From Trichosphaerium sp. ATCC 40318 (Eukaryota > Protista > Tubulinea), in contig JALMLS010000204.1 of assembly GCA_038496445.1 (NCBI GenBank), forward strand, positions 1-64,000: a DNA stretch of 64,000 nucleotides. Reading direction: 5' to 3'. The notes under the pieces were generated by a model. The model saw nothing but the letters and a program-made list of their open reading frames with translations. It made no database searches and had not been told where the DNA came from. Positions 7,311 through 56,278 of this stretch are shown here, in pieces (positions within the stretch are counted from its first letter, which is position 1; each line of letters opens with the position of its first letter). The position numbers and the translations under genes are program-made.

Positions 7311-8576
7311 CTAAATCGAAATAACACCCTTTTCTACATCAACAACACTATTAGTGTTGGATGCTTTTTGAAGATTTGCGTCCCTACGCCTTTGGTTCTT
7401 TTTCTTGTACGCTTTTTGCTGGAAATGCTTCAATCCAAGTGCGAAGATAACTAAACCAAAAAGGTTAAAACAATCCAAGAAAAAGTAAAACATTAAGTTG
7501 CAATGCGACGTACCTGTTGTGTATACAACACTAAGAAGTATTTGTAGTGTAACTATAATATAAACAAACCATTTAACAGGTGTGATATCACCATATCCGA
7601 CTAGGAGTGTTAGAAGACTTAACAGAAAAACAAAGAAAAAAGCTAGGGTCAGCGCGGAATCTAAAAAAGAAGTCAGCGCTCAAACAAACCAACACATAAA
7701 AAAATAATATTCTAGAAGAACTTACGTTATGGTATAGATACCAGCAAATAAGAATATTGTACTCAAGAAACTCTGAGCTAAAAAGTAGCCAGATACAGTA
7801 CGATGAAGTACTTGTTTTGTAAGCTTTATAGATACAACCACTATAAGTATAGACAGGAGAAACTAGATAAGAAGCGTAAGCAGTAAGACTTCTCAAAAAT
7901 GAGAGAAAAAAAAAGAATAATCAATGATTCACGTGCCTGGAATGAACCCATGACAACAAAACCAATTATATCACCTGTACTTAGTTTTGTAGATGCACTT
8001 GAAGTGTTTTTTTTAAAACCTAGAGCTCATGGTAAGCAGAAATTTTAAATTAAATATAAAACTTTTTATTTGAAAGTTTTAATAAAAATCAATTACCTGA
8101 TTCTATCCACGTGAGTACGATAACATTAAGAACCTGCCATGCCAGGGTAAAGAAAAAAATATTGTTAACGAGCCAGTATGGTAGTTTAGTCTTTTTGGTC
8201 GGAGTCTACGAATATAAGTTACGAAGTCTTAAATTTCCATAGAAAAGTACGAGCAAACACTGCGAGCGCTTAACGTACGTATAGGATATCTTGACCACGA
8301 ATTTTAGATGTCACAAAATGTAAATCAGTTTGTATACGCTGAATAGCTTGAACTAGCTCTTGTAGATCATATCTATTGAGTCTTGGGAATTGTTAGTGAC
8401 CGGAATATAATATTTTGTTATTTGCTTGCAATTGAAGCGAATTTCGCTACGTACGCGTATTCACCTCCATCACCATCCGTAATTTCTAGGTGGGAGAGGA
8501 AAGGTTGTTTTGAATCTTCATCTTCTTCTTCTGGCTTTATAAATAAGCCTTTTACCTTTCTAGCGATTCTTTGCAT
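7311..8576 (-). CDS. Multi-exon membrane protein of unknown function
   Basis: ATG at 8576 (MQRIARKVKGLFIKPEEDEDS...), several GT/GC-AG introns, hydrophobic exons, and a last exon FLDCFNLFGLVIFALGLK...VISI*. Confidence 0.55.
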
Positions 8577-8607
8577 TGCAAAAAAGTAAGGCGTTCGTGT
8601 ATTGTTG

Positions 8608-8623
8608 AAGAATAAGAGAATTA
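8608..8623. repeat. Left target-site duplication of the LINE (AAGAATAAGAGAATTA)
   Basis: Identical 16-mer at 16775-16790. Confidence 0.95.
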
Positions 8624-8729
8624 GTTAGTTAGTTTATTGTTATTTTGTTAAGGCAGGTCATTGAACAAAGCGCCCTAAAGTCGCATTCTCTTCCCCTGAA
8701 GATTGTTCGATTCTGCCGTGTTAGATTTA

Positions 8730-11700
8730 TTATTTACCTCTATCAATTGGAAAAATTTCAGTAATTGGTATATTACCGTATCTGATATTCCAGCGTATGT
8801 AATCTGTGCTTACGTATTGTTTAAGGTGTTTCTTTATTTTTATTGTTCTATTGCACCTTACGCGGTATTTTTCGTATAGTAATCTCGTATATAATGTGTT
8901 GAGTTTATTCGCTAATTTTGTGGCAGATGCAGGTTCGATTTCGAAGTTTGTTTCTAGTTCTTTTACAAATTTTTTAGTTACGTATCCTTGTGCTCCACGG
9001 TATAGGTTCGGGTCGTTAGCTTCTTCTTCAGTAGTGAATATCCATTTCACTTTGAATGGTTTTGGGTTATTAATTTCTTTTTTTCCTATTATCGCTAGTT
9101 CTAATCTTTCGTTTGACGGTTCCTCCTTTCGGAACCATTTACATTTACAGAAGGAGTTCTTTGGGTTCACAATATTGTTGTATTTCTTTTTATTGCTTAC
9201 TTTATCCTCTACGTTGTTTTTTAGGTGTTCTTGCGTTATTCGGTTTGCGTGATGTTGCAGTCTTTCAAAGAAGTATGTTGAGTGACATAAGACAAAGTGC
9301 GTAAAGTTTTCTTCTTTTTCTAATTTCTTACGGGATTGGCATATAGAACAAAAAGGATTAGGGTACATTTTCATGTATCTCGCTTGAGTGATTGGGAATT
9401 TTATATGTTTACCTTTTTTATGCATGAAATTATTTAATGGAAGGCCGTTGCTTCTTACTTTTAACAGCCATGACGATATCGTTCTGTCAATATGTAGTTT
9501 ATTTTCTGTAACGCTGGCTTTGAAATTGATATTTTTTCTCGTTCTACAGTGTTTGTTAGAGTTCTCTTCGAGTTTGTCGAAAAAATATTCTGTAAAGCTA
9601 TTTGTTACATGTTCTCTCAATCCTGATTCAAGTATGGATCCATTGAACGTTATATTCCAGTTTGGTAGACCTTTTGGGATTCCTATAACTTTATTGTTAC
9701 TTCTTTCTTTATCCGCTAGTTTGTCTGCTTTAAAATTCATTAGTAAGAGTTTTTGCGTGATGATGGTACCGTGTTTACTTTCCAGTTGTTTGATTCGTTT
9801 AACGATATTAGGTTTATTAGCTTTTATTTTATCTTCTAGGGTGTGACTAGGCACCCATAAGAATCTAATTGGTTCCGATCTTTTATTAATTTCTCTGTGG
9901 ATTCTGTTAATGGTATGGTAATGCGGTTTGTTTATCTTTTTCTTTTTTGGCCAGTTATTCCAGTTGATGATAGATTCTATTGCTGATGTACAGTCTGAGG
10001 CAATCATTATTTTGGTGTCTAATGGAGATATTTTTAGTACTACTTCTATTGCTTCTAATTCCGCGTTAATTGACGTTTTGTTAAATAAAACTGGGAGGCT
10101 AATGTTGATATTATTTGGGGCATATATGCCTATACCTGCTTCGCCTTTATTTGATAGAGAGCCATCTGTAGCTATTGTGATATATTCATTGATGATGAGA
10201 GCGTTATTGTTGAATTCGGTTTTATCTCTTCTTGTCATTTTTCTTTCTATCTTTGATAATTCGTAATTGTGTTGTAATCTTAGGCCTGTTTTTTTTAGTA
10301 ATTCTGAGGCAATCGTTACCGAGTCTGAGTTTATATCAATATCTAATTCTTCATTTGTATTACATGAGGTACAGTACGTGGGTGAAGAGAAACATCTTCT
10401 TTCCGTGATTTTCCGTAGTGCTATATTGTCTGAATTTAGGCATTTTGAGATTAGGTTATTAACGTAACCCACTGTCTGATTTACGAAGAGGGATTTTAGG
10501 TTAGCGCCTGTAAGGGGTATTAGGAATCTTGCATTGAGAAGGTTATGACGTAGTTTGGCTGAGCCTTTAATTATACCTATTGCGTTGTTGTCCATTTCGT
10601 TAAGTGCTTCATTTCCCAAAAAGATCGAGGTGCTTACAAAATCTACAGCTGGATTAATTACTGTATTGATTAGTTTAACTTTGTTGTGTACCGATAGTTT
10701 ATTAGACCAAAGCGTCTTAAGTCTTTTTCTGTGAGTAGCAACTGTTTTATTTATCTGTTTTGTAAAGTCAAGGTTTGCATTCGTTAAAATACCTAGGTCT
10801 TTGTAATTTGTTTTTTCGTCTATGACCGGTATGATTTTGTCTTTCCAGATTAATGATGGTATGTTTTTCAAGTTTACGTACTTGTTGTATGTTAGGGCTG
10901 ATTTGGAGCAGTTTATTTCCATTCCGAAAAAAGAGCACCATTTTTTTAGTATTTTGAACATTTTTTCCATGTCTTGTTTAGATTTGGCCATAATTTTCAG
11001 GTCATCCGCATATGCTAGCACTGCAATTATGATATCTGACCACATATACCCCAGGTTAGATTGTTCTAATTCTTTAAGTAAGACGTTAATGAAAAGGGAG
11101 AAAAGGATAGGGCTTATTACGTCACCTTGTCTAACGCCTTTGTTTATGGGAAATTTCTTTGATCCTACTGGGATATTTAACTCTGTACTCACATCTTTCA
11201 GTAGGGACATAATTATGTCGCACCATTCTTTGGATAGTCCTTGTATTTTCAGTGCTGCCAGAAGGGCCCAGAATTGTACCGAATCGTAAGCCTTCTTGAA
11301 ATCTATGTAAAGGATAAATAAAGGTTTTTTTTTTAAATTTGCGTCTTCTAGTATTTGGTGATACATTTTGTGAGCCATGTGGATCGATCTATTGTTATAG
11401 AACCCAAATTGGAAATCTGATATTACCTTGTTCCTCCTTAGGATACTTGTTAGTCTCTTCGTTATAAGTGTGCTGTAGATTTTGTACATCGAGTTTAAGA
11501 GGCATATTGGGCGGTATTGTGAGACGTCATCCTTTTTCTGTTTGTTTTTTTCAAGAAGGATCATCGTTGATTCTTTCCATTGCCCTGGTATTTTCTTTGT
11601 TTTGAGGCATATGTTGCATAAGTTCTTTATTATTTTTATATTGTCGTATGAAAGTTCTTTATATATTTCGGCTCCTAGGCCAGTCGTACCTGGTGCTTTG

Positions 11701-14700
11701 AAAGACTTCATCTGTTTTATAATTGTGGTTATTTCTAGCGTATTTATACTACATATTTCCTGATTGTATATCGTGTTGAAACTAGCTTTAAAGTTAGGAG
11801 GTCTTGAGAGTGTAGGTATTGGACATTTTTTACTTTGGTCTTTGTATGGGTGATCGAAGTTGCTTTCAAATAGTTTAGACCAAAAGCTATAAAACTCATT
11901 GAAGATGGATTCGTCATCGTTCATTATTATTGGAATACCGTCGATTGAGCTTATAACACTTTCTGTGAAAGAGTTAGTTCCTTTTTTGTCGTTGAATTGT
12001 TTTAAATATTTGTATTTCTTGTATACCGTACGGTTCGATAGTTCTGAAAGTTCATCTATTGATCTGTCTACGCAGATTTTCTTCATGTTGTTTGTGAGGG
12101 CTTTGATCCAATGATTTAGTAAATTCGTGTTCTTTTTTAATATGATTTTTTGTACCGAGTTTTTTTCTTCAATTCTTGGGATCCTTAGGAGTTTGTTTTC
12201 TTCAGCTTTGTCCATCCATTTATTTACTTTGTTTATATTTCTATTGATAGGTCTATTAGGTTCCTCATTAGTTATTTGGTTATTGATCTTTCTACACATA
12301 TTTTTTAGGCTTTTTAATCTTTTATGTTCTGAGTGTTCCACGTACGGTTTTCTGTTGTGATTGTTGTTTCTGATTCCTACTTCTCTAGCTGTGTATTTAA
12401 ATAATTCTTTTGTAAAATTCGTTACTGCTCTGTCGACATAAATGTCACTTAGGTACTCGTCTTCTCCTGCATTTTTAATTAAATTCATAGTGTAGTCAGA
12501 GGGAGAGAAGAGAGGGATTTTGAGCTTTAGCTTTGGACTTCTCGTGTTTAGTTTCTTCTTTGTTTTTCTTGTCTTGGGTGTGTTCTTTACTTTGCTACAT
12601 GGGATGAAACGTGTTGTCAATATAATTGGTTTATGATCTGATGCGCACTCGTCTAATATTGTAATTAGTGATGATGTTTTTTTGGGATTTGTGGTTAACG
12701 CGAAGTCGATTCTTTCATGGAGTGTACCTTTACCATATTTCTTTATTTTTGTATTTAGTTTGAAGGTAAGACTCTTAGTACAGTTCTTTAAGTGATCTAT
12801 TGGGTCTGTAAGGCCGTTATGTAACTTAAATGTATTGAGAATGTTTTCGTACTTTGTTTTGATTTCTATGAATTTTTCGTTGAACCAAAATTGTTTATCT
12901 TTGTCGTATTGGGCCATATTCCAGTCCCCTATGAGTATTACGTTATTGATATCCTTATTTTTGTTTGTCATTTTTTTTGTGAACTTACTGATGATTTCGA
13001 GTTGTTCGATTTTGTTGTGGATTTTATAAGCGCATAGATACACATTGTATATTAGCGTTAGTTTGTTGTCTTTGTTTTTGATGGTGATGGCTTGGAAGAA
13101 ATTATTTGGATGACTAATTATTTTTGTAACTTTCATTAGCTCCTTGTGAACGAGGATTGCGAGGCCGCCTTTTGCTCTTGCCGATTTCGTTGTTAGTTTG
13201 TTTTTTAGGTCTATTTTTTCTGCATCAGACCAAGACATGTTATCTATGAGATCAGAGTTAGTCTTCATGTACGTGTTATTTATTTCATTTCTATTTGGGA
13301 CGTTTGCGAAGAATTTGAAGTTTATGAAGTGTTTTTTGAGTACTTTGTTGAAGGCGTCGCTCTTTATTTGTTCCGTGGATCTATGTATTTCTTGAAGGCA
13401 TATGATATCTAGGTTATTATTTTCGATTAGTGCTTTCACATTGCTTGATTTAGTTTCTATCCTACCTTTAATGTTCCATGAGGCAATGTTTATCTTGTTT
13501 TTGTATGATTTCGTAGTTTTTTGTTTGCCTCCTCCTCTTAGACGCCTTATAATTGTTATTTTGTTATTGATAAGCGTACTTACGCGTGACGATGTAGTAA
13601 CGTACTTGAAACAGGAGAGAAAGAAAAAGTCGTCAATCTTGGCATCAGAGTTAGGTTTCATTATGTTATTTAGGAGCGTACTTATCTTTATATCATAGTG
13701 ACATGTGTAGAGGGTGGAAAAGAAGCCGTTGATTTGGATGGTCTTTGGTTTTCTAAATTTGAGGACTTGACAAATATTGTGAACTATACGTGGTATGATT
13801 AATCGATTAATACAAATGTTAGAGGAAAAACCATGTTTATTAGGTATCTTAACATGTACGAAAAGGGGCTTTCGGTTGAACTCTAAAAATAATTTGGGTC
13901 TTAATGCTGTCGTAGCGCGTCGTGCATCGTATCTAGAATCTTTTATCGCCAAAACGAAGAAGTCTTTGTTTCTTGTTAATCTTGAGAGAGAACATTCCTT
14001 TGAACTGTCTTTCAACAGTCTTCTTAGCAGATACACTACCGAAACTGACAATATAATGCGATGTCTTGTTACCTTTTGCTGTGCAATCATAGCAAATACT
14101 GCGGGCGTATACCTAATATCCTTAGAAGCTATGTAAGTTGTTTTTGTTACCTTAATTTCAGCGAGTGCAATTAAAATATCTTTAGGAGTGCCCATCCATG
14201 TCTTACCAAGATACAAGGAGAGATTCTTGTCAAATTTCATTCTACAAGGAATAAAGCGACCGAACCCATTATCTTCTGCTAGAGCAAGGTGATATCCAGC
14301 GTTCTTGAGGACTGTAACTACTGAGCTCTTGTTTTGGTTTGGAGCTAAGATAATATCGGCGATAAATGACGTCCTTGATATTCCGTGGTTCGAATACGTT
14401 TGAGAGTCTACTATTACCGCTGGTTTTGGAGCATTGGGTTTCCATTTGGTCAAGATGTCGTTAACATTGAAGGGCTCGGTGTTACTCCATAGTGGAGCTA
14501 AGATAATATCGGCGATAAATGACGTCCTTGATATTCCGTGGTTCGAATACGTTTGAGAGTCTACTATTACCGCTGGTTTTGGAGCATTGGGTTTCCATTT
14601 GGTCAAGATGTCGTTAACATTGAAGGGCTCGGTGTTACTCCATAGCGTCAGTATACGGCAGTTCATGAAATCTTCCATATAGCGAAGGAAATCAATCAAC

Positions 14701-16703
14701 GTTTTGGTTCTGTCGATATCGAAGAAGGTATGAGCACTGGCAGGAATCAAGTTCTTTCTCAGCGTATCTTTGAAGAATTTGACTTCTTCTAAGTACGCTT
14801 CAGGAACAGTACCAATTTTCAAACCAAAAACGAATGCGCAATGACCATGTGGAAGGGGAACTGATGCGTAACCAACATATCCTATAGCATGATGAGTATT
14901 TGTTAACATTAAATAAAACTGTTTTTTTAGATTTTTTGTATTTTCGTAATTACTGCAATTGTTTACATTGTATTTTACAGTGCGAGAGGTATTGATATTT
15001 TTGAAGGTGTTGAAACGGGCATAGTTTAGTTCGTATTTTTTGAAAACAAGGGAGGATTTAGTTTTTAGTTTAGAGAAAATGTTCGTTTTAGATTTGTTTA
15101 ATACTACATTTTCAGAAAAGGAAAGAGAGTGAAGAGATAATGTCTTCTTTTGTTTAAAAGAGGAGAAAATATAAAAGCGAATCTTAAAAATAGGGTTTAC
15201 GTTACCTTTAGTTAGCCAGTTTCTGAATTTAGTAGGTAACTCTATCATCTTATTAACATCGATATCGGGAGATATTGGACCGCCTGGGTAGAAAACACCG
15301 AAAGCCGCTGAGAAGTGGATGAGCTGTGTCCATTCCACCAAGCGACCATAGCGCGTCGAAAGATCAACCTTATCTGGGTCATGTTGTTCGTTTGCAAAGA
15401 TACCATCCTCGTCCTGAAGAGAGATTAGGATTTTTTGGAGTTTGAGAAAAAGAAAAGAAGGTGATACAATACTTACTTCCTCGTCCTTGTTGGATGCATT
15501 AACAAAAGAGAGGAGAAGGTTTATATTCTCTTGTTCTTCTCTCTTTGTAATGGAATCCAGGACTTGTTTTTCGAGGGTTGCTTTGAAGGGACTATCTTGG
15601 AGTGATCCTAGTCTTACCATAGCTTCTTCACGGGTCATATTGGCGAAACCATTGAGACGATTGTTGTTGTTATTTGCAGACATGTTGTGTATGTGTTGAT
15701 GAGGCGACAAAAAGGATAAGGACTGAAAATAAATTATTTTATTAATTTTATTATATGTCCGTCGGGAGTTTATGGGGGAGTGTGGTTTTCCATCACTTGT
15801 GTTATATTTGTTTCTGTTGTATCTTTTTTTGAGATTTGGCTTTGCCGTAAAATGTTTACTTCTACTTCTTTTATTCTTGATTTCTGAACATTCGTTGGAG
15901 TAATTTGTGTTGTTATTTGGGGTGTTGTTTAGGGACATTATGAGTTCTGGTAAGATTTGAAAAGCTATTATGCGAAAATATAAAGAGACGAGAGGGAGAA
16001 TTTTAAAGTTTACTGTACTTACCTTTTTGTAATGTACGTTGTTACGCGTTTTGCAATTGTGTGGGATTTTTGTATTTTCTGTAAGAAGGAGGAGCAAGAT
16101 AAATGTAATACTTGGTAACGTTACGGTTGCCAGGATTAAAGGTTTGGGTAGATTTGTTTTTATTACGTTTTTTACAACATTTTTTACTAATCTTGAGGGG
16201 AAAGGGGTATATGTGAGGTTGTGGTAACTAAGCGTTTTGTGTTTTGTGTGTTTTCTGTAGATGAATTCCGTGTTTATCTTAATTTGTCTATTCTCTTGAT
16301 GGTAATGAGGTTGATTTATACGTACTGGCACGGTGTCTGTTACTAGTCTTTTGTGGTTTGGGTTGTATCTTTCGAAAGATTTTGTGTTTGGGTTGCATAT
16401 GTCTATCGACGATAGGTACAAACCTAACACTAGAATTCTCATTATGATTATTGATATTTTCTTAAGGTTAATTCTCGATTTTTGGGGAGAAGCTCGAACT
16501 CGCTTCTTCGCTACACCGCGGCACCTTATGGTATAAGCCTTGGCCGGTGTAATTGCACGATATTCCCTCGATTTTTTTTTGTTTTTTGTTTTTTGTTTTT
16601 GTTTACGGGGAACTTGTTCCCCGACCAGCACGTTAGCCGACGGTTGCAAAACTTTTTGGCCATCGACCAACGTACCGGTTCCTTTTGACGTTGTCGATGG
16701 CAT
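8730..16703 (-). CDS. LINE polyprotein: leader + ORF1-like region + ubiquitin-like domain + AP endonuclease + reverse transcriptase + RNase H + C-terminal Zn finger
   Basis: APE motifs IASWNIKG, DIICLQE, YNVY, LIGDWN, RIDF, SDHKPI (about 13490-12620). RT motifs KAPG, YRPICLLN, QFGF, IDFKKAYDSV, GVRQGDVISP, YADD (11012-11001), YKDLG. RNase H motifs ATDGS, AELEAI, SDC, WVPSH, ADKLA. CSIC...HFVLC near the C-terminus. Confidence 0.95.
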   Translation of the reverse strand: MPSTTSKGTGTLVDGQKVLQPSANVLVGEQVPRKQKQKTKNKKKSREYRAITPAKAYTIRCRGVAKKRVRASPQKSRINLKKISIIIMRILVLGLYLSSIDICNPNTKSFERYNPNHKRLVTDTVPVRINQPHYHQENRQIKINTEFIYRKHTKHKTLSYHNLTYTPFPSRLVKNVVKNVIKTNLPKPLILATVTLPSITFILLLLLTENTKIPHNCKTRNNVHYKKVSTVNFKILPLVSLYFRIIAFQILPELIMSLNNTPNNNTNYSNECSEIKNKRSRSKHFTAKPNLKKRYNRNKYNTSDGKPHSPINSRRTYNKINKIIYFQSLSFLSPHQHIHNMSANNNNNRLNGFANMTREEAMVRLGSLQDSPFKATLEKQVLDSITKREEQENINLLLSFVNASNKDEEVSIVSPSFLFLKLQKILISLQDEDGIFANEQHDPDKVDLSTRYGRLVEWTQLIHFSAAFGVFYPGGPISPDIDVNKMIELPTKFRNWLTKGNVNPIFKIRFYIFSSFKQKKTLSLHSLSFSENVVLNKSKTNIFSKLKTKSSLVFKKYELNYARFNTFKNINTSRTVKYNVNNCSNYENTKNLKKQFYLMLTNTHHAIGYVGYASVPLPHGHCAFVFGLKIGTVPEAYLEEVKFFKDTLRKNLIPASAHTFFDIDRTKTLIDFLRYMEDFMNCRILTLWSNTEPFNVNDILTKWKPNAPKPAVIVDSQTYSNHGISRTSFIADIILAPLWSNTEPFNVNDILTKWKPNAPKPAVIVDSQTYSNHGISRTSFIADIILAPNQNKSSVVTVLKNAGYHLALAEDNGFGRFIPCRMKFDKNLSLYLGKTWMGTPKDILIALAEIKVTKTTYIASKDIRYTPAVFAMIAQQKVTRHRIILSVSVVYLLRRLLKDSSKECSLSRLTRNKDFFVLAIKDSRYDARRATTALRPKLFLEFNRKPLFVHVKIPNKHGFSSNICINRLIIPRIVHNICQVLKFRKPKTIQINGFFSTLYTCHYDIKISTLLNNIMKPNSDAKIDDFFFLSCFKYVTTSSRVSTLINNKITIIRRLRGGGKQKTTKSYKNKINIASWNIKGRIETKSSNVKALIENNNLDIICLQEIHRSTEQIKSDAFNKVLKKHFINFKFFANVPNRNEINNTYMKTNSDLIDNMSWSDAEKIDLKNKLTTKSARAKGGLAILVHKELMKVTKIISHPNNFFQAITIKNKDNKLTLIYNVYLCAYKIHNKIEQLEIISKFTKKMTNKNKDINNVILIGDWNMAQYDKDKQFWFNEKFIEIKTKYENILNTFKLHNGLTDPIDHLKNCTKSLTFKLNTKIKKYGKGTLHERIDFALTTNPKKTSSLITILDECASDHKPIILTTRFIPCSKVKNTPKTRKTKKKLNTRSPKLKLKIPLFSPSDYTMNLIKNAGEDEYLSDIYVDRAVTNFTKELFKYTAREVGIRNNNHNRKPYVEHSEHKRLKSLKNMCRKINNQITNEEPNRPINRNINKVNKWMDKAEENKLLRIPRIEEKNSVQKIILKKNTNLLNHWIKALTNNMKKICVDRSIDELSELSNRTVYKKYKYLKQFNDKKGTNSFTESVISSIDGIPIIMNDDESIFNEFYSFWSKLFESNFDHPYKDQSKKCPIPTLSRPPNFKASFNTIYNQEICSINTLEITTIIKQMKSFKAPGTTGLGAEIYKELSYDNIKIIKNLCNICLKTKKIPGQWKESTMILLEKNKQKKDDVSQYRPICLLNSMYKIYSTLITKRLTSILRRNKVISDFQFGFYNNRSIHMAHKMYHQILEDANLKKKPLFILYIDFKKAYDSVQFWALLAALKIQGLSKEWCDIIMSLLKDVSTELNIPVGSKKFPINKGVRQGDVISPILFSLFINVLLKELEQSNLGYMWSDIIIAVLAYADDLKIMAKSKQDMEKMFKILKKWCSFFGMEINCSKSALTYNKYVNLKNIPSLIWKDKIIPVIDEKTNYKDLGILTNANLDFTKQINKTVATHRKRLKTLWSNKLSVHNKVKLINTVINPAVDFVSTSIFLGNEALNEMDNNAIGIIKGSAKLRHNLLNARFLIPLTGANLKSLFVNQTVGYVNNLISKCLNSDNIALRKITERRCFSSPTYCTSCNTNEELDIDINSDSVTIASELLKKTGLRLQHNYELSKIERKMTRRDKTEFNNNALIINEYITIATDGSLSNKGEAGIGIYAPNNINISLPVLFNKTSINAELEAIEVVLKISPLDTKIMIASDCTSAIESIINWNNWPKKKKINKPHYHTINRIHREINKRSEPIRFLWVPSHTLEDKIKANKPNIVKRIKQLESKHGTIITQKLLLMNFKADKLADKERSNNKVIGIPKGLPNWNITFNGSILESGLREHVTNSFTEYFFDKLEENSNKHCRTRKNINFKASVTENKLHIDRTISSWLLKVRSNGLPLNNFMHKKGKHIKFPITQARYMKMYPNPFCSICQSRKKLEKEENFTHFVLCHSTYFFERLQHHANRITQEHLKNNVEDKVSNKKKYNNIVNPKNSFCKCKWFRKEEPSNERLELAIIGKKEINNPKPFKVKWIFTTEEEANDPNLYRGAQGYVTKKFVKELETNFEIEPASATKLANKLNTLYTRLLYEKYRVRCNRTIKIKKHLKQYVSTDYIRWNIRYGNIPITEIFPIDRGK
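13933..15683 (-). CDS. Predicted spliced ORF1 protein (about 441 aa; exons 15683-15477, 15413-15206, 14881-14151, 14112-13933) ending in an RRM-like domain
   Basis: Three GT-AG introns matching host intron style. The last exon is in a different frame from the long ORF and reads VYARSICYDCTAKGNKTSHYIVSFGSVSAKKTVERQFKGMFSLKINKKQRLLRFGDKRF*. The start codon is a best guess. Confidence 0.6.
14340..14645. repeat. Perfect 153-bp tandem duplication (2 copies, 51 aa each) inside the LINE
   Basis: 14340-14492 equals 14493-14645; the protein shows LWSNTEPFNV...FIADIILAP twice. Confidence 0.95.
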
Positions 16704-16723
16704 AGATCTTGTTTTATTTAATT

Positions 16724-16774
16724 AGCGTCGTTGCCCAGGGTGAACTGCGTGGAAGTCGCTGGTGTTGTCACCCC
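16724..16774 (-). ncRNA. Minimal HDV-like self-cleaving ribozyme at the LINE 5' end
   Basis: GGGGUGA-CAACACC-AGCG-ACU-UCCACGC-AGU-UCACCCU-GG-GCAA-CGA-CGCU: 7-bp P1 with G1-U wobble, P2 AGCG/CGCU, P3 ACU/AGU, L3 UCCACGC, P1.1 CC/GG. G1 abuts the TSD. Confidence 0.8.
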
Positions 16775-16790
16775 AAGAATAAGAGAATTA
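16775..16790. repeat. Right target-site duplication of the LINE
   Basis: AAGAATAAGAGAATTA, identical to 8608-8623. Confidence 0.95.
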
Positions 16791-16833
16791 TAACAAAACT
16801 CGCTTATCACCCACAACACTTAAAGTAGCAATT

Positions 16834-17984
16834 ATGTTGCGCTTCACTAGGCCGCTCTATCAAAGTCTCAGCTTAGAGAGTGCATTAAGGAGGAGCAGAA
16901 GAAGACGCAAACCCACTAAGAAGGTCGAAGTTGATACAAAAGAACACATTGATTTAACAAGAGGTTTATACATTCGCATAAAATAGCGCTTTTATAACGT
17001 ATTTAGGTCCTCCGCAGCATTTTGCAGTTGTGAAGTCACCAAAAGAGTGGAAACAAGGTCTAACGCATAAACAATTCCACGTTACAAGAGAACACGGTAC
17101 TGAGCGTGCTTTTCATAACGAATATCACGATGAGAAGGCTAGCGTACGTAAAAGTCACTTCAAACGCGTAATAGACGTATTGTAGTACCCTTCGGACAAA
17201 AATACATCCGTAATAAATGTTTGTAGGGTATTTACTACTCAAGATGTGGTGGACAGCCTCTATTCAGTTCTGATCACAAATATGACAGTGGGACAGTGCG
17301 TACCTTTGACATTTTAATCAAACAACTAAACTCTACACAACAGGGATGGCCATCATTTTGGCGTCCTATAAAAGAAGAAGCTGTTTATTACAAGACAGAT
17401 AGTTCTTTTGGTTTTTCAAGGACAGAGGTAATGGATTTTTTTTTATAAATATTTGACAGATGACTTTCTTCTTCTAATACTCCGTTCAGGTACTTTGCTA
17501 TAAATCAGGCGCTCACTTAGGTTTGTGAAACACCCCTTTTACTATTTTAGTTAATGATGTTTCAGGACACGTGTTCTCAGATGGTCCAAAACCGACGGAA
17601 CTTCGGTATGCAAAAATTAGGGTTTCTTGGTGTTTTTCTGATTGTTGTACTGTCTAGTTATTGCATGAACTCTGCTTCTCTTGATTTCAAAGAGGGGATA
17701 TCTTCGCTTACGCCACCAGTTGAAGAAAAAGCGGATATAGAAAACGAAGAAGAAGACGGTATGGATGAAGCAGAACAAGAAGAAACCGACGATACAGAAT
17801 TTAACGAAGAAAGTGTTGAATCAACGGATACACCAGTTACAAACCAGACTGAGGATACACCACAACAGACTATAGATCCCAAAGATTCACCTTCAGATGC
17901 GGGTGTTGAACCAGAGATTGCACAAGGCACGTGTACTGGTACTAGAGGAGAGTACTAATAGTTTTGTTTATAGACAAAAAGTAA
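16834..17984 (+). CDS. msrB: Peptide methionine sulfoxide reductase B with N-terminal targeting-like leader and acidic C-terminal tail
   Basis: Spliced motifs [54 protein letters not shown]. Confidence 0.92.
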
Positions 17985-18158: not shown

Positions 18159-20080
18159 TTACTTTGTTTTTGGCTTCTTTAGTACCCATACGTCATCACT
18201 ATCTTCTAACTCATCACGTGGTCTTTTTTTACCTACTATAACATTGCTAACAAAAAAAACGTCATCTAGCTGCACATGCATTAAAAAAATATAAATACAT
18301 TCAAAAAATAATATCAGCTACTGTTGGTACCTATGTACAAAATAATCTTCGTCTCCAGGATGACTAAAAGTAGACAAATGCTGTTGTTGCTTTCTATAGC
18401 AATTTGAACCATACTTACACTTTTGTCTTCCTTTATTGTTATGTTGTTTTTTTGATGTGTTTGTCTGAGAGAAGAAGTTAAGTCAAGATCAAAAAAAAAA
18501 AATTGAAATAGATTCTGGTTTTTTGTTCGGCCTTGTTGTAGTAACAGTTAACTCACCTGTTGTATTATTTCATCTTCATCATCGCTACTGTCTTCCATTG
18601 TAAAGTTTGCAAATAAAGGTTTTTTAGGATCTGGTACATCTGAATTGTTTTCTGTTGTATCTTCGTCTTCATCTTCATCTTGACCATTAAGCTTTGGTAT
18701 AGTCTTTGTAAACAAAAGACTCCTTGTTCTTTGTAATGTATGTAGCTTTTGCCTTGACTGTTCTTTCTCTTTCCAGTTCTCTAATACCTCGTCCCATGTA
18801 ACATCCTCTCGGACTCTCAAGAAAGAAGGAAATCTAGATAAGAAAACATGAGTAGCCAGATAGAGAATTTAAGGCGGAGTTTTATATGAAAGATTGGAGT
18901 GTACCTTGGTTTTCCTAGCTTTGTAAGTTCTTGGTACTGAAAGGTAACAATTGATCCAATAGGTGGAGGGTTACAATGCTCTATTTCTGTAAAACCACTT
19001 CCAATTGTAAAGTCATGTCCATTTGGCCTATTTTTTAGAATGAGTAAATTTTGTAAGTTTTGACCTTTCTGTATTGGCACCGTACATTTTACACATTAAA
19101 TGCCTGTGATTCTTATTGGTATTTCCAACTTTGTAACCTTGAAATATGCGTTACACAACAAGTAAAACACGATGAAAAACAATTTACAAAAAACAATCAT
19201 ACCTGTAACTTTAGCTTCCTCATCGTGGAACACCTTAACCTTCAACAAAGTAGACGACCGAACCCCTTTTAGATGTAAATAAGAGCAATACCAAAACATC
19301 ATTTATAACATTACCTTCGTAATAAGACTGTGGTTGCCTTAACATCAAACCTTCACCTCCTTGCTATTTTCTCAAGATTAGATATTTTAACACGTGCTAA
19401 AACGAAAAGGTACAATTAACTCTTGTACCTTTATGACATCCTTCAACATTTCACCAAGATGTTTCTTATTCTTACATTTTGTTTTACCAACACTTGTTGC
19501 ATACTTACACTTTGTAACTAACTTTTCAAACCGTTTACATCCTGAATTAGAAGTCGTAAGTTTCAGGTTTTCGACGTGTTGTTTTGTCTGATACTGCTAC
19601 TACTTTTGGTGCAGTGCTTGGTGGTAGTGTTCACGCACGTTTTTCATAAGGCTCTAGAATCTGTGGTGCATCAAAGACGAGATAGAGCACTTTTTTCCAC
19701 TCGTCGTGTTGTAGGTTTTTTGTTTTCTTTATAATGCCCACGGTTTGTTGAAACAAGCCTCTACCGCACCTAGGCGCCGTATCAGCTTAATGTAATAATA
19801 ACATAATTGGAAGGCAGAGTGAAATTCAAACAACGTTCTAAACGTGCCATAGTTCGCCATCAAGGTGCTCTGAAGGGAAATCAGCAGTAAACCAGTCCGG
19901 CGCTTTAAACGGGTTACCAGCGCGGCTACAAAGCGTTTTTCCGTCCCAATACGCCCTGACACCATCCAGCTTCTCAGAAACCCACCTTTAGGAGTATTAT
20001 TGATTAACGGTGGTTTTGTTTACGTACCAATCGGAAGGGTCATGTTTTTCTTCGTACTTTTTAGCAAGGAGGACGTTCAT
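18159..20080 (-). CDS. Compact bacterial-type ATP-dependent DNA ligase (adenylation + OB domains) with acidic/basic tail
   Basis: VLLAKKY, WVSEKLDGVRAYWDG (motif I), SRAGNPF, LDGELWCGRG, YLVFDAP, GGEGLMLR, RSSTLLKVK, FTIGSGF, PPIGSIVTFQYQELTKLGKPRFPSFLRVR. Confidence 0.9.
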
Positions 20081-53615: not shown

Positions 53616-53871
53616 GGCGTCGGGAAGTTACATCAAATTGATAACCAAGCGTAACGAGGAGATATTAGACTAATATTAGCGAAACGTTTCGATTTGGAAG
53701 TCAATACCATTCTTGGCGACTAAGCCAATTAAAATAGCTGTCAGTGGCTTCGGCACGGTGTTCAACAAGTCTGAGTGTCCTTTGACGCATTGGTTGTACC
53801 GAGTTCCTGCAGGGATCACTTAAGGGGTTCGAAGGAACTAGCAGTACAAAACCGTTTATTAAATACCAACG

Positions 53872-56278
53872 ATGGGTGATAAAAGTGCTGAAGTAGCAAG
53901 GATAGCACAGAGATATGCAGCGTTTCAAAGAGAACAAAATGCTGCTCTCCAGGCTGACAAAAATGCTAGAATTCAGCAAAATCTAGTACAAGCTGATGCT
54001 GTTATCGCAGGGGAAGAAAAACAAAAACTAGACGCCAAACAAGCTGAAATTGACAAACTTCAACAAAATGGTACGTTAACCCTTTACTGACGCGTCAGCA
54101 AGTAAAATACTATTTTTTTCAAAATGACAAAAACAAAATAACGTGATTGTCTAGCCAACGCTGCTTGTGCTTCGCTTCAGTCTAAGTATTGGCAACACCA
54201 GTTGGACAAAAAGTTCTTCGACATGGACACCAAAGTCGAGATAGGTGCGGGCGCTTCAGCTACCGTCTACAAGGTATCATACAAGTCTCCTGGATGCCGC
54301 ACAATTCAAGTTGCCTTGAAGGTAATGACACACCATGTTTGTTAACAGAACCAAAAACGAAACGTTTTTTGCTTTTTTTTTTTAAATGTTTGGAGACATG
54401 ACACTGTTAGGTGTTTACGACTAGTAATGCTATTGGATCAACAGAAACTGTAGCGTACATGCAAGATGAAACGAAACTTTTATCAAAACTAGCGTAAGGC
54501 CTTACAACACAAAAACCGCTTCAAAAATCCAAGAGAAAAAAAACGTGTGCTAATTTTTTTTTACCCACAGCAAATGTCATCACGAAAATATTGTCACTTT
54601 TTATGGTCTCATATTTGATGGGATTAAACCTACGGCTATAGCGCTGGAATATGTAAATGGTACGTCGACAACACAAAGAAGAAAATTTCCGAAAGAAAAA
54701 AATACATTCAAATATTTTCTTCCTTTTGAACTTACAAGAACAGGGAGAGACTTGTATTATTATTTATACACTGACAAGAATTTTCGCTTTACTCTTGAAC
54801 AAAAGAACACTATCATAAGTAAGATTATTCAAGCGATGGCGTATGTTCATGAACACATTGGCGTAAGTGACTTGTTTTTTCAATATTAATAATTATTTCT
54901 TTAAGTCCTTTCTATTCATTTGTTATTTCTACTACTCCTCAGTTATTTAGTGTTAATATTTTTATAGATTATACACAGAGATATAAAATCAAGCAATATT
55001 ATGGTATTAAAACAACGCCTGTTTACAACAGAATCCAAAAAAACCCAACTCTGTTAATTGGTTTTTTTTTCATTAGATTATGCATGATGGTGATCACTAC
55101 GTCCCTAAGATAACTGACTTTGGCGTTGGTAAAGAATTATCAAATAACTTAGTATCATCGTTGGGTAGTGGAGGCGCAACAGTTACAGCAATGACATGTA
55201 ACCAGGGTACGTAATAAAGTAACATGTTTAACCTTCCAATCTTTTAATAAGCAAATCCTACTAACTGATACTAGGTACTCCATTGTGGATGGCACCAGAG
55301 GTGATGAGAGGTCAACCATACAACCAAAGTTGTGATGTTTATTCTTTTGGATTAGTCGTATACGAACTGGCTACTGGAAAGTTGCCTTGGCCAAAGACGA
55401 TAACCTTACTTGAGCTCAAAAATAACATATGCCGATTTAAAAAACGACCAATTATTCCAAAGGATTGCGACCCAAACCTCAAGCATCTCATGGAGATATG
55501 CTGGGCCGAGAACCAGGAGAAGAGACCATCTTTCATTGCTCTTGAGTCGCTAAGGATACAAAATGAAGACCATAAGCGCAGAGCAACGATGAAAGCAGTC
55601 AAACAAGCTGAAGAACTCGAGAAAACACTTGTACTGTCGAAGTACATGAGTTTTATGATACACCCTTGCTTTTGCTTATATATCATGTTTAGGTTGATTC
55701 ATGTAGCAACATGTGTGGAAGATACTTGTAATAACCCTTTCGTTGGTTACAAAACATCCGCAATGGTTCGCACAACGCTAGAGATAGCTTTAGACGATTT
55801 ACAGGCAATATCACGTGAGTACTTTTTGTATTTTTCGTTTTAGTTTTTGTGGACACGGGGAACCACTATGATTTGTCCATTTGCTTGATACTACCGAAAT
55901 CGTAAAGATATACATAATAAGTTGTTGAATCCTTGTTGTATGCAAGCACTCACACGTCAAAATCGTTTCACTATTCTTATTATTTTCTTATTTAGTACAA
56001 CTTAAAGACCTTTCTATGAAACGAGAAGAAGAGAGGGTAAAAACCCTCACAAACAAATCCATCTCAATGCTAGAAACACTTAAAAAAGTAGATACAATAG
56101 CAGAAATGTTTAGAATAGCTCCAGAGCGTGCTTTAAAAGACCTAAAGCTCTTGGATGGAAATCTTAATAACACAATTAGTTATTGCATAGATGTATACGG
56201 TAACAAGTAAAGACACTTGAGAGCCTTTCTTGTTAATTAAACTTCATCACATCTTTGATTCCTTTAGATGCAAAATAG
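53872..56278 (+). CDS. Tyrosine-kinase-like (TKL) protein kinase with N-terminal coiled coil and C-terminal UBA-like helices
   Basis: IGAGASATVYK, VALK, HENIVTFYG, HRDIKSSNI, KITDFG, GTPLWMAPE, DVYSFG, RPSF. Confidence 0.9.

Follow-up and report, generated by a model that had tools for sequence, protein, structure and literature searches.

Since retroelements are copied from RNA, introns are expected to vanish from them, and long interspersed nuclear elements (LINEs) are generally described as intron-less, with the products of their two open reading frames (ORFs), ORF1p and ORF2p, made from one unspliced bicistronic RNA. L1Tc/ingi are single-ORF elements of the non-LTR (LTR, long terminal repeat) type that encode a polyprotein with an N-terminal 2A peptide. 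In Drosophila copia, splicing controls the expression of Gag versus Gag-Pol, and Arkhipova et al. are said to have described, in 2003, Penelope-like retroelements retaining spliceosomal introns. Splicing control of Gag versus Gag-Pol is likewise documented for other Ty1/copia elements, namely BARE in barley (PMC3735527) and EVD and other copia elements of Arabidopsis (PMC5580714), while PMC4209133 states that Penelope-like elements keep spliceosomal introns. The RNA of human LINE-1 (L1) is also spliced, with spliced integrated retrotransposed elements (SpIREs) as a result (PMC5860796). The LINE considered here lies on the minus strand of a 64,000-nt stretch of DNA from Trichosphaerium sp. ATCC 40318 (contig JALMLS010000204.1, positions 1 to 64,000; hereafter the window), an intron-rich eukaryote with a 70-Mb genome of ~37% GC. 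ORF1 of this element contains two GT...AG segments, A and B, and a third candidate intron, C, downstream of them. Judging from sequence, A and B would be real introns kept translatable for read-through, a reading to which we give a probability of roughly 0.6 and which leaves the original prediction, that of in-frame introns selected for read-through, partly supported.

The element is a full-length non-LTR retrotransposon of 8.15 kb (8623..16774, minus-strand sense, its 3' limit at ~8623) that starts with GGGGTGACAAC at its 5' end and finishes in a short (CTAA)-type repeat at its 3' end. Pfam locates on it, in this order, Exo_endo_phos (PF03372, 1.4e-10), RVT_1 (PF00078, 9e-38) and RNase_H (PF00075, 3e-11), that is, the apurinic/apyrimidinic (AP) endonuclease, reverse transcriptase and RNase H of an AP-endonuclease LINE joined in one ORF (ORF2, 8733..13481). 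The insertion is bordered by 15-nt target-site duplications of sequence AATTCTCTTATTCTT (5' copy at 16775..16789, 3' copy at 8608..8622). A second copy (G000:C265:38206-46202) matches it end to end, the identity beginning and ending at the limits given above and both copies starting at exactly the same base; they differ by 1 nt (window position 16205) and by one 153-nt duplication. This second copy has other flanks and its own target-site duplication of ~11 nt, AAACTCCGAAA, and neither copy has LTRs. Because the duplications differ, the two copies are separate insertions, and the element is young, full-length and has inserted at least twice recently. The domains, the target-site duplications and the near-identical second copy bear out the earlier statement that the segments sit inside a retrotransposon ORF. 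The AP type of its endonuclease and the presence of RNase H place the element outside the Penelope-like group, and the lack of LTRs and, by Pfam, of protease and integrase domains places it outside Ty1/copia, with which it may nonetheless share a way of working. The closest outside relatives of its ORF2 are only ~30% identical. A 640-nt ORF2 fragment elsewhere in the genome (G000:C132:135422-136059), 94% identical to the element, represents a third insertion of the family, which is older and truncated.

A single frame of 2663 codons (8733..16721, stop TAA 8732-8730) runs without interruption through the leader, ORF1 with its candidate introns, a spacer and ORF2, the other two sense frames holding 251 and 206 stops. 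Segment A follows exon 1 of ORF1 (15477..15683; ATG 15683, 69 codons) and reads, on the minus strand, GAA/GTAAGT...CCTAATCTCTCTTCAG/GAC (15476-15414, 63 nt, phase 0; in outline GTAAGT...CTAAT...CTTCAG). Segment B is separated from it by the 208 nt of exon 2 (15206..15413), precedes exon 3 (14151..14881) and reads AAAG/GTAACG...TGTTAAC...GCTATAG/GA (15205-14882, 324 nt, phase 1; in outline GTAACG...TTAAC...CTATAG). Both begin with GT and end with AG, both are multiples of 3, and both translate in the flanking frame without a stop, A as VSIVSPSFLFLKLQKILISLQ and B, over its 108 codons, as an F/K/N/S-rich 108-mer; sequence and translation agree with the original prediction in each of these respects. 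G takes codon position 1 at a frequency of 0.07-0.10 in A and B versus 0.20-0.33 in the exons (0.30 in exon 1), an excess that exons and ORF2 share, and the overall content of A and B is 6-7% G and 33-43% T. They look non-coding, being constrained just in phase and in the absence of stops. When 20,000 shuffles were used to estimate how often a segment would be stop-free by chance, B gave P = 0.0004 (its other two frames contain 11 and 8 stops) and A gave P = 0.52, so that only B is remarkable when taken singly.

Comparison with a diverged relative, C361, which shows 53% amino-acid identity over 2362 residues and has its own open frame of 2389 codons, extends these observations. Its homologue of A measures 72 nt (17265-17194, GTACAC...CTTCAG) and that of B 177 nt (16982-16806, GTACGC...CACACAG), each a multiple of 3 and stop-free. 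Between the two elements, A, B and C each differ in length by a multiple of 3. GT and AG occur at the same aligned sites for the three segments, all six boundaries being kept, whereas in the region overall the two elements have in common 30% of GTs and 28% of AGs; the acceptor of B is counted as shared after allowing for one gap-placement artefact in the C361 alignment. Amino-acid identity, on the contrary, falls from 57% in exon 1 to 38% in A, is 43% in exon 2, drops to 16% in B and recovers to 50% in exon 3, and the interior of B, with 49 gap columns, cannot be aligned. Position and phase are therefore kept while the interior diverges clearly in B (16%, 324 versus 177 nt) and weakly in A (38%, 63 versus 72 nt), and the lower conservation that was anticipated for the segments relative to the exons is found in B and not in A, which is close to exon 2. 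The B homologue of C361 has a shuffle probability of 0.07 of being stop-free. In neither element does A, B or C contain a stop in the read-through frame; multiplied together, the six shuffle probabilities come to ~2e-6, which supports selection keeping the frame open through these segments; the selection for stop-free read-through that had been proposed is hence favoured by B and by the joint value, and not by A alone. Branch-site-like motifs lie 10-40 nt before the acceptors (CTAAT in A, ending 11 nt before AG; TTAAC and CTCAT in B; CTCAC and CTGAT in the C361 homologues), but this test is weak because such motifs are common in AT-rich sequence.

Candidate intron C (14150-14113, 38 nt, GTAACA...ACTTAC...TTAG) follows exon 3 and has a 47-nt homologue in C361 (16221-16175). 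Both are 2 mod 3, and removal shifts the frame. It is precisely at the acceptor that the shifted frame opens, and in both elements it remains so for 59 codons, up to a stop at the same codon (exon 4, 13933..14112, with TAG 13935-13933). Between the elements, 24/59 residues are identical in the shifted frame, with 13 synonymous codon differences, versus 16/58 and 7, respectively, in the read-through frame, which is stop-free as well. By this comparison, exon 4 is a putative hidden exon, conserved, and better so in its shifted frame than in the read-through one; with both frames open, spliced RNA would encode a complete ORF1p, and unspliced RNA would reach ORF2. Programmed -1 frameshifting into exon 4 was considered and rejected, since no X XXY YYZ heptamer is common to both elements in its first codons and the acceptor TAG is the exact point at which the shifted frame begins. 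In the read-through frame, exon 4 continues into the spacer between the ORF1 stop and the endonuclease (13482..13932), and the 215 codons from 14126 to 13482, devoid of codon periodicity, would be stop-free by chance with P ~3.5e-7.

These features are best explained by a scheme in which the ORF1 of a recently active LINE holds two weak spliceosomal introns of the GT-AG type, A and B, with C as a third one downstream; A and B are probably real, weak, retained and kept translatable. The unspliced full-length RNA would be the template for target-primed reverse transcription, and every copy would keep the introns because it is the unspliced RNA that is copied; the fact that both copies with target-site duplications retain all three candidate introns indicates that the RNA copied was an unspliced one. 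The same RNA would be the only message on which ribosomes coming from the ORF1 ATG, or from upstream of it, reach the endonuclease and reverse transcriptase, and any intron before ORF2 would then have to be translatable. A and B would be held at multiples of 3 and stop-free, and C at 2 mod 3 and stop-free, for the unspliced frame to continue, while removal of A, B and C would shift the frame into exon 4 and end translation at TAG 13935-13933, yielding ORF1p only. Splicing would in this way govern how much ORF1p is made relative to polymerase, the role that it has for Gag and Pol in Ty1/copia. We infer that splicing occurs, that the long fusion protein is made and that polymerase derives only from unspliced RNA. 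The complete proposal is more tentative, and we see the odds as somewhat against it: polymerase would be made only from intron-holding RNA, every intron before ORF2 would be translatable, with cis-preference only intron-bearing RNA would be copied, and splicing would act as a Gag/Pol-type switch.

Other LINE families of the genome are also giant single frames, of 2135 and 2761 codons. In one of these families, one site of ORF1 carries a GT...AG segment of 51 nt in one member (G000:C153:15401-15351) and of 60 nt in another (G000:C375:21415-21356), in both cases a multiple of 3, stop-free and in frame, with unrelated interiors. The segment is precisely absent from a third relative (G000:C47, near 317518), where the flanks join as ...ATAG/GCAAAG..., and precise presence or absence at GT..AG borders is what classically marks an intron in genomic comparisons. 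The splice scores of these two segments are weak too. The case provides an independent replicate that, at sequence level, supports the kind of feature, not A and B themselves. One further candidate was discarded. In the distant C99 family, one copy (C80) is 63 residues short in ORF1; the missing stretch looks coding and the frame changes, indicating a deletion and not an intron. ORF1 of the C99 family was also tried as an outgroup for the intron positions, and profile comparison gave just a 43-residue N-terminal similarity with a probability of 7%, of no use for that purpose.

Splice-site strength was evaluated with position weight matrices derived from 23 host introns, rebuilt from five multi-exon HSP70 paralogues, whose boundaries were picked solely on GT/AG ends, on frame and on the score of an alignment with a paralogue that has no introns; percentiles are given among all GT/AG sites or pairs in the element. 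These host introns span 43-120 nt (median 57), have 43% T, are multiples of 3 in 6/23 cases and have donors of the form GTA[CA], with consensus GTACGT. Donor and acceptor fall at the 90th and 95th percentiles for A, the 70th and 80th for B, and the 34th and 95th for C, the pairs being at the 97th, 82nd and 83rd, respectively, versus a host median at the 99.9th. The homologous pairs of C361, whose sites were picked by alignment alone, are at the 69th (A), 98th (B) and 90th (C) percentiles. The sites of A, B and C are better than random yet clearly weak, and B taken alone would not pass as better than random GT/AG pairs. The expected match to host intron style is consequently partial: the GT/AG ends and the donor types GTAAGT (A) and GTAACG (B), which do occur in host genes, conform to it, and the pair of A ranks high within the element, whereas the pair scores of both A and B remain far below the host median.

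Several of the results weigh against A and B being introns kept translatable. Their pair scores of 8.9 and 1.4 compare with host values of 17.6 (median) and 2.8 (minimum), 27 GT sites in the element beat the donor of A and 85 that of B, and B is longer than all 23 host introns. Such weak sites fit introns that are often retained, yet an absence of splicing would fit them just as well. That A is stop-free is unremarkable (P ~0.5), and its translation is, at 38% identity to C361, near the 43% of exon 2. The family comparison itself relies on one diverged relative, and the assembly contains no intron-less (processed) copy of the family in which A and B would be precisely absent. An AlphaFold model of unspliced ORF1, built from a 2-sequence alignment, has a mean pLDDT of 34, too poor to show inserts interrupting a fold. 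A profile of both ORF1s gave 0 matches against 1.84 billion representative proteins; Pfam matched no domain on unspliced ORF1 or on each exon separately, and the ESM Atlas returned no usable match for exon 3.

Of the other explanations, the one that best withstands the data, although we regard it as unlikely, is that A and B are never spliced and represent fast-evolving low-complexity linkers in a giant polyprotein, in which GT and AG are coincidental codons (GTA Val, CAG Gln, GGT Gly). It accommodates well the unremarkable score of B (82nd percentile), the position of both segments far below host introns, their multiple-of-3, stop-free state, which is the look of plain coding sequence, and the pattern L-x-K-[IL]-L-x-x-L-Q that the A peptide has in common with C361 at 38% identity. 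Linkers of this kind are harder to reconcile with segments that have no coding periodicity and are G-poor and T-rich, unlike every flanking exon, with a B that differs by 49 codons between relatives and is unalignable, or with six boundaries that all keep GT or AG in C361 when ~30% of such dinucleotides do so overall. In addition, the neighbouring intron C is needed for access to a conserved out-of-frame exon, and the analogous segment of the other LINE family is precisely absent in C47.

A second possibility is that A and B are efficiently removed introns whose open frame yields no useful fusion protein and only protects the unspliced genomic RNA against nonsense-mediated decay, or arises as a by-product; ribosomes would then get to ORF2 through reinitiation or internal entry, as in mammalian L1. 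Retained introns with premature stops are known to trigger decay, the peptides encoded by A and B resemble translated junk, and there is an in-frame ATG in the spacer downstream of the ORF1 stop, all of which would suit it. Reinitiation, however, needs no open frame across exon 4 and the spacer, and the read-through frame is open there (13932-13482; P ~3.5e-7 for the interval 14126-13482). Several other LINE families are likewise single giant frames, of 2100-2800 codons, and weak splice sites suit retention better than efficient removal, making this explanation quite improbable. Finally, capture of a host gene with its own introns, fused in frame to the LINE by chance, could account for an ORF1 without a recognisable LINE ORF1 domain or homologues, but it is already contradicted, and hardly credible, given that the region is enclosed by target-site duplications in each of two separate insertions, is collinear and conserved in the diverged C361 element, and has no separate host copy in the genome.

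Upstream of ORF1, the 5' leader (15684..16703) contributes 340 in-frame codons from the first ATG at 16703. It shows no codon-position periodicity, with G flat over codon positions, and would be stop-free by chance, from base composition, with P ~4e-10; its first 338 nt have 78% identity with C361. No host-type donor in the element scores higher than the GTACGT at 16675 (13.3), which lies 28 nt past the first ATG and has a conserved counterpart in C361 (20550). All three top leader acceptors (16424, 16403 and 16079) are in phase with it, delimiting 252, 273 or 597 nt, and the leader may contain a further in-frame intron. The C361 leader (G000:C361:20644-18024) is longer, 3.1 kb versus 1.1 kb in the window element, is broken by stops, and has TTAGGG repeats near 19619 together with several acceptors and donors that are very strong and of the host type; foreign sequence may have been inserted into it. 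An HDV-like ribozyme had also been proposed at the 5' end of the window element (16774-16724), but an Rfam scan of 8000-17500 with E up to 1 matched no family, and hence no recognised ribozyme there.

Exon 3 of the window copy contains a perfect in-frame tandem duplication of 153 nt, or 51 codons (14340-14492 and 14493-14645, minus strand). The otherwise identical C265 copy does not have it, which dates its origin to the insertion or later. In the spacer, a 77-nt segment (13681-13605, minus strand, GTACGC...CTAAC...TTTCAAG) combines the best acceptor score of the element (11.7) with a strong donor (9.6); this segment has no conserved counterpart in C361 and may be due to chance. Near the end of the spacer stands RRLRGGG (13547-13527), one instance of an (L/I)(R/K)GG(G) ubiquitin-tail-like motif that directly precedes the endonuclease in five LINE families, those of the window element, C361, C47, C153 and C99. 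Pfam detected no ubiquitin domain. The motif might mark a cleavage site freeing ORF2p from the fusion.

Regarding the host, its genes, e.g., those at window positions 53870-55850 (plus strand) and at the HSP70 loci L034-L042, are intron-rich, with very short introns of 43-120 nt and the unusual donor consensus GTACGT. Its cytosolic-type HSP70 is intron-less, occurs in four copies and is only ~65% identical to any protein matched, with animals, fungi and plants alike, and the lineage seems poorly sampled. Neither this HSP70 comparison nor an Atlas search with the reverse transcriptase pointed to a lineage, and one host ORF had no exact protein match on record.

When the element is set beside the systems mentioned at the outset, Ty1/copia offers a comparable coding logic, as far as the sequence can be read: a long ORF on the unspliced RNA, a spliced RNA that would serve for the structural protein only, in excess, and an unspliced RNA that is the one copied, with C shifting into a conserved exon that ends in a stop while the unspliced frame continues. 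On the contrary, Ty1/copia elements have LTRs, replicate in particles and possess an intron whose removal takes away pol, whereas this LINE is non-LTR and has its candidate introns inside the structural gene, two of them frame-silent and the third a frame switch. With Penelope-like elements it shares genomic copies that retain a spliceosomal intron, here a candidate one, copied from unspliced RNA; those elements differ in their telomerase-like reverse transcriptase and GIY-YIG nuclease, in place of the AP endonuclease, LINE-type reverse transcriptase and RNase H found here, and have no described rule of an open frame through the intron. As in human L1, a LINE RNA would contain splice sites, in conflict with full-length copying, but splicing in L1 is a defect that gives dead copies, whereas here the architecture is kept between 53%-identical relatives and looks adaptive. 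One long ORF across the whole element is a trait in common with L1Tc/ingi, which have no introns, and the candidate processing signal here is the ubiquitin-like RLRGG before the endonuclease. Literature searches found no LINE described with a splicing design of this type.

An element with three introns, two of them in-frame and stop-free and the third a frame switch, would differ from the general picture of LINEs. If the reading of A, B and C as weak, retained and translatable introns is true, this LINE would rely on the spliceosome of its host to balance ORF1p against polymerase, which has so far been documented for LTR elements and retroviruses. If, in addition, the polymerase prefers the very RNA that encoded it (cis-preference), this would account for introns persisting in a retroelement. 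The element would also represent a natural case of selection on translated intron content, relevant to nonsense-mediated decay, to intron retention and to how introns are gained and lost.

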